Assembly: GCA_964035545.1 (NCBI GenBank)
Contig: OZ037772.1
Location: 11,654,818-11,718,817 of the forward strand
Direction of reading: 5' to 3'
DNA from: Bugula neritina
Lineage: Eukaryota; Animalia; Bryozoa
DNA length: 64,000 bases
Both the position numbers and the translations under genes were made by a program. Below, in pieces: positions 37,272 through 63,892 of the stretch. A model generated the notes under the pieces. It ran no database searches and was not told the DNA's origin. It was given only the letters and a program-made list of their open reading frames with translations. The number at the start of each line of letters is the position of its first letter. Position 1 is the stretch's first letter.

Positions 37272-39333
37272 TTAGGCTGGCAGCAGTTTTACTTTAATCT
37301 CTCCACAGTTATCTGAGTGTGGTATATGATGATTTATCAGTAAATCCTCCTGAAAAAAATGTAAAAGAAATGTCTGACTTTTGAAGTTTTAAAAAATGCT
37401 ACATTTTAATTTAGTTATGTATTATTTATTATGCAGTTTAGTTTATGTAATTATCTTGCAAAAGATCTGTTTTTTTATAAAATGCTAGTAGTTTGCAATT
37501 GACCAACTGAATTGGTTGTTTTTGAATAATAATTTACACTGGCAAATATAATATAATAATATAATAAAACAATATATTATAAGAAATTTTGTTCATTCAA
37601 CCCACTAAATAAAAGATATATAATATTTTTAAACTCTATGTCAACCAAGAAGTTGTAAACTATATGCATAAAATTAAATAAACATAAAAATAGCATTATA
37701 TATATTATAAGAAATTTTAGATATAATAACTATACTGAGCATAATACAAATATTAAATTTTGGTATATTCTTATTATGATATATTATATAATAAATTAAT
37801 ATATCATCTATAAGGGATAATTTAGAGCATAATACAAAAGCAAATAAACAGAATATTATATTGCTAGTAAGATAATACCCATATGTTTCCAGCAGATCTT
37901 GTCTGTAAATCATCCAAGAATTTGTGTAAAATTGCCACAATAATTGTAAAGTATTCCAATCTGTAATGCTGCAAGGCATGGCACATGATTTGTCTTCCAT
38001 GGTCAAGCAACTATAAAATAAAATTAATCAATTGATTTTATCTCAGAAAAATGACAGTTAGTATGATAGTTAGTATGAAAGACTGAGAACTGACTTACTA
38101 TTGCTGTTTCTGGCCAGGAAGGCAGTTTACCCGTCTCGTAAAACTCTTTCATATACTTTGTGTGCTGGAGAACCATTATGAGCTCTTCACCAGTTGCAGT
38201 ATTGAGACTTATCTCCTCCGACAAAGTAGAGCCAAACAACTTAACTGAGTAAGTATAGGACACCGTGATTACATAGCAGGCAGCTGCCAGCTGCCAGAAG
38301 GTCTTACAAACTTGCAGACATTTTAGTTTAAAAACTAAACAAGTTAAAAATCATGAAGTATTCTTTTAATTATTTTGGTAGATAATTTTATATTATTTTA
38401 ATAAACAGAGTATTACTCCTAGATATGTGTTGTATATATAATAATATATTTCTTGGTTAAAGCCTTCAAGTTTCTCAAATTTTATCTCATCTATGTAAGT
38501 ATAAAACAAAGAAATTATTGCTTTTTCATTTAAAATAGGTAAGTCTTGTCCGTTTGTAATTGCAGTTTTGATTCGAGTAGTTGTTATTATTAAACTACCA
38601 ACATATCAAAATAATACAAATATAATACAATAATGCAAATCTGTTTGGATTCATCTCACCTAGTCTTTCCAAAACAGCCTTTTCAACCACAAACAGAGGA
38701 ATAAACTCAATTTCCTGTTTACCAAGTGCACGCTCTGCAGAAGTCAATGTTATGCAACTCTTTGCCAAGTCCGTTTCTTTTATACTACAACAAAAGTACT
38801 CTAGTTTAGTCAAAACAAGATGGCAACAGTTTAAAAAATAAAAATATAACCTTTGAATGAAGTTCAAAGATTAATTGTACTCTTTTAACAGGTTTTTTTA
38901 GCTATACTAAAAACTTTCATTCTAAATGTTCTACACACATGCATGGCTTAATAGCACAAAGTAAAGCTTTTCGAGTTTTTAATAGTTTATGTTGAAGTAA
39001 TGCTTCATGTAAAAAAGTGTTTTGTTGTTTTTATTATAGAGATAACAAATTATTATTAGTAAAAACATAAATTAAAAATAATTTCAACATAAAACTTTAG
39101 AAAGCATTAAGTTGATTTACCTTATCTTTTTACTATTTATAACAAATCATGGCACGCTGGTTTTGAAACAATTTACAGGAGAGCTAGGATTTTAAAAACA
39201 GGGCTTGAAAAGCTATGCTGTAAGAAGACAGCTTGTCCAACTTTCATATTTCACTAATTTGCACTAACCTCTGATGGACAAATGTAACCAGCATTTGCTT
39301 GTTGCCAGGCAACGGAAGTTCAACTTCATTCAT
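37272..39333 (-). CDS. Small helical protein (~181 aa), divergent Bcl-2-fold candidate; paralogue of the genes at 58-61 kb and 62-64 kb, without zinc fingers
   Basis: Exons 39333-39269, 38784-38660, 38244-38099, 38010-37879, 37349-37272(TAA). Phases 2/1/0/0 and the 146- and 132-nt exons match the 58-61 kb gene. MNEVELPLPGNKQMLVTFVHQS...ALGKQEIE...VLERLV...MKEFYETGKLPSWPETAI|LLDHGRQIMCHALQHY...IVAILHKFLDDLQTRSAGNIW|EDLL. The gene model is solid; the fold call is inference. Confidence 0.75.
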
Positions 39334-40795
39334 TTTTGACTGAAATATTAATAATTGCAGAGAAACTTCTCTTAACTATAGCATAGTAGGGGGTCTTGAA
39401 GCTTACTTTAGGCTTTTCAGCTAAAACAAAAAGCTACATATAAACTCCTGAAAGCTTGTTGACACGTGTTGAGTCATCTTCAGAACTAACAGTGTCATTC
39501 GAAAGCTATCACAATTCAATGAAGAGAAGCTGTTGATTGACCTTGCACAATTGGTCAAATGTTACCAACTATATAAGCACAAACTTGACCTATTTATCAA
39601 TGAGTTTTCAGTCAGAAATTTATATGATCAGCCTTATAAATTATCAGACAACAGTAGCTATAGAACATATCATGAATTGCATTCTACAATTCAATATCTC
39701 TGCTGCTATGACTGCAGTGTGATTTGCTGATTAAATTTTGTTATAGACTCTTAGCTCCATTTATCCCATTCATTCACTTGACACAAATATGTATTAATTC
39801 AACAAGAGATTTTACTTAAAATTAGCTAAACTACTAATAGTAATACAGCTATTAATTAGATATGTAAGGATTGTGTACTGAAAAGGAAATCAGCACCTAT
39901 GTAGAAAAGTCACAGCATTTTTGCTTATAAATGGTATTGATTGATTGAATTAATTAAATTTATGAAGAAAAATAAAGAAATAAGGCTATAAAAATTTTCC
40001 ACTGATACTTCTGGCTTACCTGTAGATGAATTTTTGTTAATATTTTATGTGTTTTTTTATAAATACTTGAAAGAATGTTCTTTCAAATTTTCAATGCATT
40101 TTTTACATTATTGTGAAATCAAAAAGTAATTATTTGCTATATTAATTTATGGATAACTAATCATAATTGTTATAGCTGGAAGACATGCATACACTAACAT
40201 ATAAGAAATTTGATTTGCAGAAAAAAATATAAAATATATAAAGAATAAACTTAGTGTGCAACACAAAAGTTATATAAACTTGATAATTCACACTATTATA
40301 AAAGAAACAAAGAAATTAGTTTGAATTTTCTAAATAACACATAACATATCTAATTATATAACAGAGAATTTACACTAGTTATAATTGTTCTATTAATCAT
40401 GCAAGATTAAATGATAAAATATATAATAATTAAATGCTATTAAAGTTATTCAGATATTAATATAGTTTCTAAAAGTTATAAACTACAGGTTAACGCCTGA
40501 CATACAAAAATATTACAGATAAAAAGTAACAACAATTGTTTATGAAAATCTAAAACATAACTGAAAAGATTACACAATAAAAACATAAAATAAATAATTA
40601 GCTTTTTTTTAAGGAAAAATTTGACTAGAATTTAGAAAGAAATATTGTCAACACTGTCATTATAAAGCATGATAGCAAGTTTCAAACTTCAGTCAGCAAA
40701 AATTGAATAATTGAGGTAATTTTCAAGTTGAATGAATGTCTTTCAAAGCTAATAAGTTTTTCTATGATTATATTTTTTTTAAAAACAAACTTAAG

Positions 40796-62114: not shown

Positions 62115-63892
62115 CTAGAATACGGATGCACCGCAGAACTTGCAGGAGTAAGTGTCCTTCTTATCCCGTAGAGCCACTCCACTCTTATCACATGACACGC
62201 ATGCCTTAGCAACGACAAAGTTGTTTTGTTCGATGGCTTTAGGGTCAGCGGCTGCCAGACAATCTAATTTACCAGACCAGTGCAGAGTCTCGCTCAAGAT
62301 GTGTTTTCTCATATCTGGTGCTCTTTTACAGCTGTAACCACAGACCAGACATTTGTAGGAGTCACACAGTCTGCACTTGCCTGTGTACTGATTGACCTTG
62401 AATAAGTCAGATGCTTTTCCTATGCATGGGTTATCACATGGGTGCAGAGCAATCTTGTCGTCGTGCATTGGAGTTAGCATTTGGAAGACGTTGGTGGGGC
62501 AGTTGGTGTATTTAGAACAAACTGAGGCGTCGTCTAAAGTGTGTTTGGGGGTCTTTCCTAAATGCAATCCAATAGCCTGTGATGATTTGAACTCGTCTCC
62601 GCAGACTAAACACTGGAACCTCTTACAGACGTTACACTTGCTACTCTTTGTGTTAATATACTTCCTTCCTATTTCTGCGCCGCATGAGCAACCAACTAAA
62701 GGAAGTGCACCGTTCGGAGCAACAACCATTTCACTCTCCTTCTTGGTGGTTAATTCTGCGCTGTAGTTGTAAGCCAAGAGCTCATCCTATACAAAAAGAC
62801 CATTGCACTGAAACAGAAGTCCTATATTTACCGACAAAATGGTCGGCATTTGAACAAAGTAAATCTCAGACTTGTCAACTGAAAAACATCAAACAGTCAA
62901 AGCTTCTCGATATTGCTTAAAAGCTATCAGAGTAAGTCCAAGCCATGAAGCCATGTGTCATTGGTTAGTTTATAAACTTTGCAAGCATGGCTGACAATTT
63001 GGATCTTTGCTGCCTTTAACGACAGCAGCTATGTCAGTATATTTATAGCAGATGTATAAATGTATAGTGAGCGTTCATCCCCCAACTGATAATATAATAT
63101 ATCTTTAGCTCTTATATGTTGAAATTGCCTAACCTAATAAATTGTTTTATTAATTACTGCATGTGTTTTTATTCATAATTTGTAAAAATGGATGGAATAC
63201 TGCTGTGAAGTACTTGGAGTAGCAAGTAAACAAGAACTATATCATGTATCAAAATAATTGAATGAGCCTTTGGTTGAACCTTACCCAGAAAATTTCTGAC
63301 ATGGTTACGCTTAAGTCTTCAAAGAAGTAGTACAGGTAGTTTACCACATCGTGGAGTCTTAGCGCATCAAAATGCTGAACTGTTTCTAGCACCAAATGCT
63401 GAGCTGTTTCAAAAAGCTAAAACAGCGCATTTGAAACACAAATGTATCTAATAATATGCGACACTTTTATTTGATTTAAATTTAGTTTTTACAAGAGAGT
63501 CAATTTACAAGTTAATTGCTGTAAGCATAAATTCATACATTTTAAATATCCCGAATTTCATTATCTCCACACGCAATGAATTCAGATACAGCCGTTGGCT
63601 GCAAGTTAGTAGCAGCACCAATAGTGATATACACATACTTTAAACTTTCAACTCTAAACTCAGCTTTGTGCTGCTTCTAGCGATATTTAACTGAAAAGTG
63701 TTTCACCCTATATAATCAACTAATAATAGTTAGCATAAAAACTTACAATAGCCATATCTGTCGAGGAGGGGGTCGTGCATGAGATTCCACTATAAAACTG
63801 TCGCACTGCAGGCAAGCTATTTAAAGCCTCCTCTAATTGCTTATTGGTGAGTTGAGCAGCATTTGCTATAAGGTCAACCACCTGGTTGTTGG
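62115..63892 (-). CDS. Bcl-2-fold-like/zinc-finger protein, paralogue B, last three exons (5' end beyond the window)
   Basis: Exons 63892-63747 (146 nt), 63416-63285 (132 nt), 62786-62115 (672 nt), the same lengths as paralogue A. NNQVVDLIANAAQLTNKQLEEALNSLPAVRQFYSGISCTTPSSTDMAI|LFETAQHLVLE...VVNYLYYFFEDLSVTMSEIFW|DELLAYNY...; the putative zinc ligands are conserved. Confidence 0.8.

Follow-up and report, generated by a model that had tools for sequence, protein, structure and literature searches.

The window analysed here, a 64,000-nt stretch of a bryozoan genome assembly (G000:C8:11654818-11718817; assembly of 216 Mb, ~31 % G+C), contains three related genes on the minus strand, g1, g2 and g3, and raises the question of what kind of domain forms the N-terminal part (N-domain) of their products. 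An earlier note, made from the sequence alone, had taken the products to be a three-member family of repurposed, soluble proteins with a Bcl-2-like fold. The best explanation overall, to which a probability of about 0.78 was assigned, is that the genes belong to a Bugula-type family of proteins which possess a divergent Bcl-2 domain and, in most members, a zinc-finger module, and which would act as soluble adaptors. By Pfam criteria these proteins are not Bcl-2 members, yet they are homologous to the Bcl-2 family by fold, sequence profile and gene structure.

Gene models and extent of the family

Gene g1 was modelled with five exons (39333-39269, 38784-38660, 38244-38099, 38010-37879 and 37349-37272), with splice sites and frame read from the sequence, and encodes 181 aa. 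Gene g2 also possesses five exons (61049-60994, 60481-60351, 59632-59487, 59046-58915 and 58665-57994), exon 2 measuring 131 nt, with an acceptor 20 nt further upstream than initially guessed; its product of 378 aa comprises the N-domain (approximately residues 1-165) and the part encoded by a zinc-finger exon. Exons 3-5 of g3 lie in the window (63892-63747, 63416-63285 and 62786-62115), and exons 1 and 2, which lie past its end at window-equivalent positions 65381-65305 and 64889-64759, were taken from L005, giving a full protein of 385 aa. All introns are bounded by GT..AG. The first four exons measure 65/56/77, 125/131/131, 146/146/146 and 132/132/132 nt in g1/g2/g3, and intron phases 2, 1, 0 and 0 are common to the three genes. 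N-domain identity was 46 % between g2 and g3, and 20-21 % between g1 and either of them. The rebuilt models therefore confirmed the shared exon lengths, phases and alignable N-domains (identities 20-46 %) by which the three genes had been grouped.

Exon 3 of g2 (59487..59632, minus strand; 146 nt) is predicted to encode the end of a putative Bcl-2 homology 3 (BH3) motif, α3-α4 and a degenerate BH1 (P-T-W-S-D-M-A-K), and exon 4 (58915..59046, minus strand; 44 codons), flanked on both sides by phase-0 introns, the second half of α5, α6 and α7 up to the BH2 Trp. Exon 3 terminates in W-x5 followed by GT in g1 and g2, with Ser at that Trp position in g3. In all three genes the last codon of exon 4, before the GT, is TGG (Trp), and exon 5 opens with D/E-(E/D)-L-L, which confirmed the phase-0 intron at W|D/E described previously. 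The last exon of g2 (57994..58665, minus strand) is predicted to encode α8 (DELLAYNY), followed by a linker and a Cys/His module of ~190 aa. This zinc-finger module is also encoded by the last exon of g3 (62115..62786, minus strand), with 47 % identity between the two genes. Gene g1 encodes the Bcl-2-fold domain only, its terminal exon consisting of 25 codons with a stop; a zinc-finger exon 3' of g1 was looked for in the sequence and none was there.

The family proved to be larger than three members. When the same contig was searched with profiles and by tblastn, g4, g5 and g6 plus three extra zinc-finger exons were located at C8:11.788-11.830 Mb, giving at least six N-domain genes within 140 kb of contig C8 and, with them, at least seven zinc-finger exons at C8:11.69-11.83 Mb; an exon-4 profile detected further weak copies 80-110 kb away on this contig. 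The tblastn query was P0015, a B. neritina protein of 403 aa encoded by the 1,506-nt contig L041 and the only full-length relative with an identifier, and it returned a complete five-exon g4 (L035), g5 (L035/L038) and g6 (L036), as well as the three extra zinc-finger exons, which lie in L038. Contig L041 aligned on the B. neritina genomic sequence L037 as five blocks with GT..AG bounds. It is therefore a spliced mRNA, and the five-exon plan is thereby proved at the RNA level for one member. When 1.84 billion representatives were searched exhaustively by HMMER using the zinc-finger profile, eight clear relatives and four weak generic matches were obtained, the named relatives all being hypothetical proteins of B. 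neritina. Word-index protein searches returned no sequences from outside the family: the zinc-finger exon matched P0001, and P0015 residues 1-175 matched P0004 when searched as a region of the protein but gave no match when submitted alone. Judged from these searches, the family appears so far to be known only from Bugula-type sequence.

Orthologous sequences allowed selection to be estimated. The B. neritina contig L001 is orthologous to the g2 locus (DNA identity 87-89 %), the annotated B. neritina protein P0018, the g2 orthologue, has an identical FW|DELL junction, and the last exon of g3 has the B. neritina orthologue P0002/P0019. From this DNA identity, and from the B. neritina origin of the named relatives, the window was concluded to come from a bugulid bryozoan that is near to the sequenced B. 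neritina but distinct from it. The ratio of non-synonymous to synonymous substitution rates (dN/dS) between g2 and its orthologue was 0.11 for exons 3 and 4 (six non-synonymous and 13 synonymous changes) and 0.16 for the zinc-finger exon 5, with ~13 % divergence in the introns; the genes are thus under purifying selection. The extreme divergence of the paralogues (20-46 %), the missing zinc module of g1 and the loss of the BH1 Trp in g3 and of the BH2 Trp in g6 might instead suggest decaying, functionless duplicates, but this explanation is scarcely credible given such dN/dS values beside introns that differ by ~13 %, the open frames and intact splice sites of g1-g3, and the spliced mRNA contig of another member.

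Evidence for a divergent Bcl-2 domain

The fold was predicted for residues 1-178 of P0015, which has the same five-exon plan as the window genes; profiles of g1-g3 and of the P0015 subgroup were aligned by hhalign at E 2.3e-26 over 160 columns. The alignment used (A8) consisted of family exon fragments only, with no Bcl-2 sequence and no rows over exon 3, and MAFFT alignments with exon-3 or short exon-5 fragments (A4, A6 row 4 and A7), being visibly misaligned, were left out of folding. The best AlphaFold (AF2) model contained seven helices, with a predicted local distance difference test score (pLDDT) of 77.7 and a predicted template modelling score of 0.64. When this model was compared with 48,161 PDB cluster representatives using VIA-align, ranks 1-23 were all occupied by the Bcl-2 family (Z 8.8-6.1). 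In the Bcl-2 rows the alignments comprised 111-142 residues and spanned model residues 8-178; unrelated rows began at Z 6.1, and the Bcl-2 fold accounted for 31 of the top 50 rows. Human Bcl-2/Bcl-xL, Trichuris BCL-2, CED-9, BHRF1, BAX, BOK and sponge BHP2 were among these 23, as were schistosome, Hydra and Trichoplax Bcl-2, Mcl-1, Bak and several viral homologues. The structural argument draws on the uniformity of this list and on the coverage of the whole domain, not on absolute Z. Foldseek likewise ranked Bcl-2 and Bcl-xL highest, although weakly. The outcome of the fold test suggested in the earlier note was thus favourable, on the homologue P0015.

Two other identities considered for the N-domain were rejected. 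A TIR-like β-strand had been suspected from the stretch 'K-Q-V-F-V-S-Y', which forms helix 1 of an all-helical model. The other was the autoinhibitory C-terminal domain of a gasdermin in detached form, but the top 50 structural rows included no gasdermin chain. With exon 4 as the query, an ESM-Atlas feature search gave scores of ≤0.80 and named no family, and an Atlas structure search with the P0015 model returned only weak bacterial rows (template modelling score, TM-score, <0.42).

A second line of evidence came from comparison with the Bcl-2-like genes of the same genome. Scanning G000 in six frames with the Pfam Bcl-2 model PF00452 gave 29 exon matches, on contigs C3, C4, C5, C6 and C8 (loci L006-L034), many of them on C8. 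The reference alignment comprised 14 Bcl-2-like genes of G000, namely 12 split genes and two canonical unsplit genes, and hhalign matched the eight-member family profile to it with P 7.2e-5 and a score of 31.7, a score reached by none of 200 shuffles (100 column shuffles, maximum 15.6; 100 block shuffles, maximum 26.2). In this register the BH1 Trp is matched by the Trp of family exon 3, and the α6 Trp by the 'V-N-W' of exon 4. The two subgroups aligned in the same register when taken alone (P 0.003 for the window subgroup and 9.5e-5 for the P0015 subgroup), whilst global hhalign with three sequences alone gave P 0.066, the clear signal requiring the eight-member profile.

Intron positions provided a third line. 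Almost all animal Bcl-2 genes possess an intron directly behind the TGG codon for the BH2 Trp, and this intron is a hallmark of that family (PMC7527217). Exon 4 ends in TGG|GT in seven of the eight members of the present family (g1, g2, g3, g4, g5, Bn2 and P0015, confirmed for P0015 by alignment of cDNA with the genome), the exception being g6, which has lost the BH2 Trp. Exon 3 ends in W-x5|GT, again in seven of the eight, with g3 lacking the BH1 Trp, and the exon after it measures 44-45 codons. Approximately 13 PF00452-positive divergent genes of G000 likewise possess a second phase-0 intron exactly five residues past the BH1 Trp (e.g. N-W-G-K-L-V-L|gt), their next exon of 44-52 codons running through α5-α7 to G-G-W|gt, whereas the two canonical Bcl-2 genes of the genome (L006 and L007) lack this second intron. 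The comparison of introns within the genome, which the earlier note had advised, thus revealed not only the shared BH2 Trp intron but also an unexpected second phase-0 intron inside α5. Because this derived α5 intron is shared, the origin of the family was placed inside the local Bcl-2-like expansion, its most likely ancestors being the divergent Bcl-2-like genes of this genome. Those genes represent a large lineage-specific expansion, most of them with a degenerate BH1 (W-P-Q, W-T-R and W-E-R, compared with W-P-E, W-S-D and W-P-H in the present family) and the extra α5 intron. They still score with Pfam and retain GGW, whereas the present family does neither, and its five coding exons contrast with the two of classical pro-survival genes.

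Several results weigh against a Bcl-2 domain, and some of them would suit an alternative in which the N-domain is an unrelated helical bundle, drawn by AlphaFold to a familiar topology, with introns and weak profile similarity coinciding by chance. PF00452, whose cut-off is 31.4 bits, gave no match at E<=10 on P0015, on P0015 residues 1-175 or on single exons of g1 and g2, nor did the six-frame scan of G000 produce a match inside the window, so that the relaxed-threshold Pfam check put forward earlier turned out negative; phmmer against PDB sequences gave nothing relevant. Single sequences scored weakly with a hidden Markov model (HMM) of the genome's Bcl-2-like exons (6.3 bits for g3, reached by six of 2000 shuffles, and 4.8 bits for g2, reached by 13 of 2000), and g1 was not significant. 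A Z of 8.8 is, by the tool's own note, within the range that helical bundles reach by common arrangement (<13 for a helical protein), and the best Foldseek rows, to Bcl-2/Bcl-xL, were weak (E ≥0.15, probability 0.92, TM-scores 0.42-0.57). The alignment for folding was shallow and the five AF2 models disagreed, one having pLDDT 77.7 and the other four 61-67; residues 71-110 of P0015, where exon-3 rows were lacking, were poorly modelled, and the modelled protein is the orthologue of a paralogue and not a window protein. Splicing was demonstrated by RNA solely for the P0015 gene, the sequencing runs that hold the g1-g3 locus being DNA-like, with short contigs (90-95 % likeness) and no joints, and the function of the g1-g3 family is wholly inferred. 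An unrelated bundle is nevertheless unlikely, since three independent lines (structure, hhalign and introns) point to one family in one register: all of the top 23 structural rows and 31 of the top 50 have the Bcl-2 fold, P is 7e-5 with none of 200 shuffles reaching the score, and two exact phase-0 intron positions are shared. The interpretation of the N-terminal ~165 residues as a highly divergent Bcl-2 domain is accordingly supported, on indirect evidence.

The predicted order of elements in this domain is α1/BH4-like, BH3-like, degenerate BH1, α5-α6 and BH2 Trp. The assignments of BH4, BH3, BH1 and α6 plus BH2 made previously stand in the right order, in the helices indicated by the structural matches, and the description of NWGR as degenerate also held, the BH1 Trp alone being retained, in seven of the eight members. 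In every member the BH1 Gly position is occupied by Ser, Pro, Thr, Glu or Val and the Arg position by Asp, Glu, His or Ser; both BH2 glycines are lost in the family. The BH3-like stretch of g2 (L-R-S-V-A-N-S-I) lies at the expected distance from BH1 and has no statistical support, and g1, g3 and the P0015 subgroup fit worse. In g2, the stretch from the small residue of the putative BH3 to the BH1 Trp spans 43 residues; by our own count, taken as a lead only, the spacing in Bcl-xL is the same. A C-terminal transmembrane anchor, which is typical of the Bcl-2 family though not universal, is missing, as had been stated: the highest 19-residue Kyte-Doolittle mean was 1.36 and the tails are polar.

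These features bear on whether the proteins are classical Bcl-2-type apoptosis regulators, with BH3 helices still bound in the groove and with a zinc module that relocates or regulates them. Such a role would be in keeping with the fold, with four BH-like stretches in canonical order and spacing, with the L-x-x-V-A-N-x-I retained by g2 at the BH3 place and with purifying selection on the N-domain. In known Bcl-xL and Bcl-2 complexes, however, the BH1 Arg pairs with the BH3 Asp, and this position is Asp, Glu, His or Ser throughout the family; as the anchor is also missing and the Pfam Bcl-2 model fails, a classical regulator appears rather unlikely.

The zinc-finger module and the gasdermin neighbours

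In most members, a single exon (~220 codons in g2 and g3) encodes a Cys/His-rich, basic module in place of the membrane anchor, g1 having a 25-residue tail instead. Alignment of 14 module sequences (A9) gave 28 invariant columns, of which 14 are Cys or His, and five zinc sites were predicted, in the order C4, C2H2, C4, C2H2 and C4. The unit C-x2-C-x12-H-x(3-6)-H is present twice and is invariant in the 14 sequences. The Pfam zf-C2H2 model matched weakly (E 0.008, 17 bits, below its cut-off of 25.2 bits), and the module profile matched designed or natural C2H2 arrays among PDB sequences with a summed E of 2.5e-6. An AF2 model of the module had pLDDT 66, with a best structural Z of 3.8 to U1-type or C2H2 single fingers. 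The module therefore resembles classical C2H2 and U1/matrin-type fingers in its two C2H2 units, the first of which bears a weak structural likeness to U1-type fingers in spliceosomal and TUT proteins (Z 3.4-3.8). It differs from classical C2H2 fingers in having a C4 site before each C2H2 unit and another at the end of the protein, and in being a ~190-aa module with no Pfam family, which beyond its own family matches only generic multi-C2H2 proteins, weakly. The isoelectric point was 8.7-9.2 for the zinc module (9.2 in g2) and 4.1-5.6 for the acidic N-domain.

Zinc-finger exons with no obvious Bcl-2-like exons directly 5' were observed at L038:3771-4487 (minus strand), 6434-6856 (plus strand) and 7914-8510 (minus strand), and at L037:479-967, 2106-2726 and 4110-4607, and the Logan open reading frames (ORFs) P0020 and P0021 begin shortly 5' of the zinc module. 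The zinc module may therefore also occur as a stand-alone gene, in the same way as g1 is a stand-alone Bcl-2-like gene.

Three gasdermin genes adjoin g1. Exons for the gasdermin pore-forming domain (Pfam PF04598, E 1e-5 to 1e-4 per exon) were identified on the minus strand at 33675-33469, 30959-30747 and 26133-25906, 4-20 kb from g1. At least two of the gasdermin genes begin with M-M-F-N-(M/I)-A-V, and an acidic, Ser/Thr-rich exon lies at 30301-30747, after the last gasdermin-domain exon. A pyrimidine-rich acceptor (ttttgtgttttag; window 33676-33690, minus strand) directly precedes the gasdermin ATG at 33675 and may be only the acceptor of a 5' untranslated region (UTR) exon.

This arrangement raises the possibility that the Bcl-2-fold proteins act in trans to restrain the neighbouring gasdermin pore-forming domains, or that g1 exons 1-4 are spliced in frame to the gasdermin at 33675. 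In trans, the Bcl-2-like domain would restrain the pore-forming domain; in a fusion, the Bcl-2 fold would replace the missing gasdermin autoinhibitory domain. The zinc module would be the trigger-sensing part. Exon 4 of g1 ends in phase 0, so a join to the gasdermin acceptor would be in frame; besides the confirmed gasdermin N-domain exons and the strong acceptor (ttttag) before the ATG, human Bcl-2 has been reported to target a BH3-like region of GSDMD (PMC6901440). Adjacency, however, is the sole basis for such a partnership. Gene g1 ends in a terminal exon of its own that contains a stop codon, most members (g2-g6) do not adjoin gasdermins, no joints were seen in the DNA-like runs at the locus, and an acceptor before a start codon is ordinary in genes with a 5' UTR exon. 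Restraint in trans or an in-frame fusion is therefore improbable, and that the Bcl-2-fold proteins of the cluster are, by either route, dedicated partners of the adjacent gasdermins was judged very improbable. If true, the partnership would connect the machineries of apoptosis and pyroptosis in a way not known before.

Further features of the window were recorded. A low-complexity tandem repeat of ~1.9 kb (53497-55389), with strong GC skew and long spurious ORFs on both strands, is flanked on one side by an ENaC/degenerin-like first exon (minus strand, near 52.2 kb and 55.3 kb) and on the other by g2. Long (TA)n microsatellites occur within g2 intron 2 at 59850-59912 and 60179-60321. At 63900-64000 and beyond, in g3 intron 2, the sequence resembles a reversed tRNA T-arm (GGGGACTCGAACCC) and is possibly a tRNA-derived short interspersed element; ARAGORN called no tRNA in this stretch at the window end. 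The end of an ORF at 5121-5372 (minus strand) resembles what we take to be the C-terminus of a CTR-type copper transporter.

Proposed mode of action and significance

On the preferred reading, a divergent Bcl-2 domain joined in most members to a zinc module, the protein would be soluble and not tail-anchored to mitochondria. The acidic Bcl-2-fold domain would serve as a protein-binding module, with a groove whose chemistry is altered, since the BH1 Gly-Arg is replaced by Ser, Pro, Thr, Glu or Val followed by Asp, Glu, His or Ser; the basic zinc module would bind either a partner protein or nucleic acid. As a whole, the protein could then be an adaptor or regulator, with a probable role in cell death or immunity that is proposed from the Bcl-2 ancestry, the tandem diversification and the gasdermin neighbours, whose link to the family is one of adjacency. 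The earlier suggestion of signalling scaffolds rather than BH3 binders would agree with the absence of both the BH1 Arg and the transmembrane anchor. If the fold is accepted, a non-canonical adaptor is the leading, still tentative option, with chances a little short of even; a canonical BH3-binding regulator relocated by the zinc module is doubtful, a DNA-binding regulator more doubtful, and a gasdermin regulator hardly likely.

The family was compared with known systems. With the multi-motif Bcl-2 family (PF00452: Bcl-2, Bcl-xL, CED-9, Bak/Bax and invertebrate Bcl-2-like proteins) it shares a predicted helical bundle over the whole domain, the order BH4/BH3/BH1/BH2, the phase-0 intron after the BH2 Trp codon and significant profile similarity to the genome's own members. 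It differs in having no PF00452 match, in the reduction of NWGR to W and of GGW to W, in the loss of the BH1 Arg, and in that a zinc-finger module of ~200 aa or a short tail replaces the transmembrane anchor. To our knowledge, almost all Bcl-2-fold proteins of cells are tail-anchored and regulate mitochondrial apoptosis, and the soluble, motif-less Bcl-2-fold binders of signalling proteins that we know of are mainly poxviral.

The poxviral Bcl-2-fold proteins (N1, A46, A52, K7 and B14 types) act as soluble binders of signalling proteins and resemble the present family in having the fold without recognisable motifs and no transmembrane anchor; N1L, A52 and A46 were among the structural matches of the P0015 model (Z 5.3-5.8). 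The poxviral proteins are viral and single-domain, whereas the present ones are cellular, encoded by intron-containing genes and fused to zinc fingers, and no homology between them is claimed. By analogy, the poxviral proteins might nevertheless be the closest working model for the mode of action of the family. We know of no report, from a narrow literature search, of a Bcl-2 domain combined with a multi-zinc module.

The finding would mean that an animal genome independently evolved soluble Bcl-2-fold proteins, which were tandemly diversified and in which the anchor was replaced by a multi-zinc module belonging to no described family. It also illustrates that homology missed by sequence models can be recovered from intron positions. 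Should the fold be confirmed, the family would be a natural example of a Bcl-2 domain repurposed beyond the reach of the Pfam model, and the α5 intron would serve as a historical marker of the Bcl-2 expansion in bryozoans. The genes would then offer a tractable entry to the essentially unstudied cell-death or immune pathways of the phylum Bryozoa.

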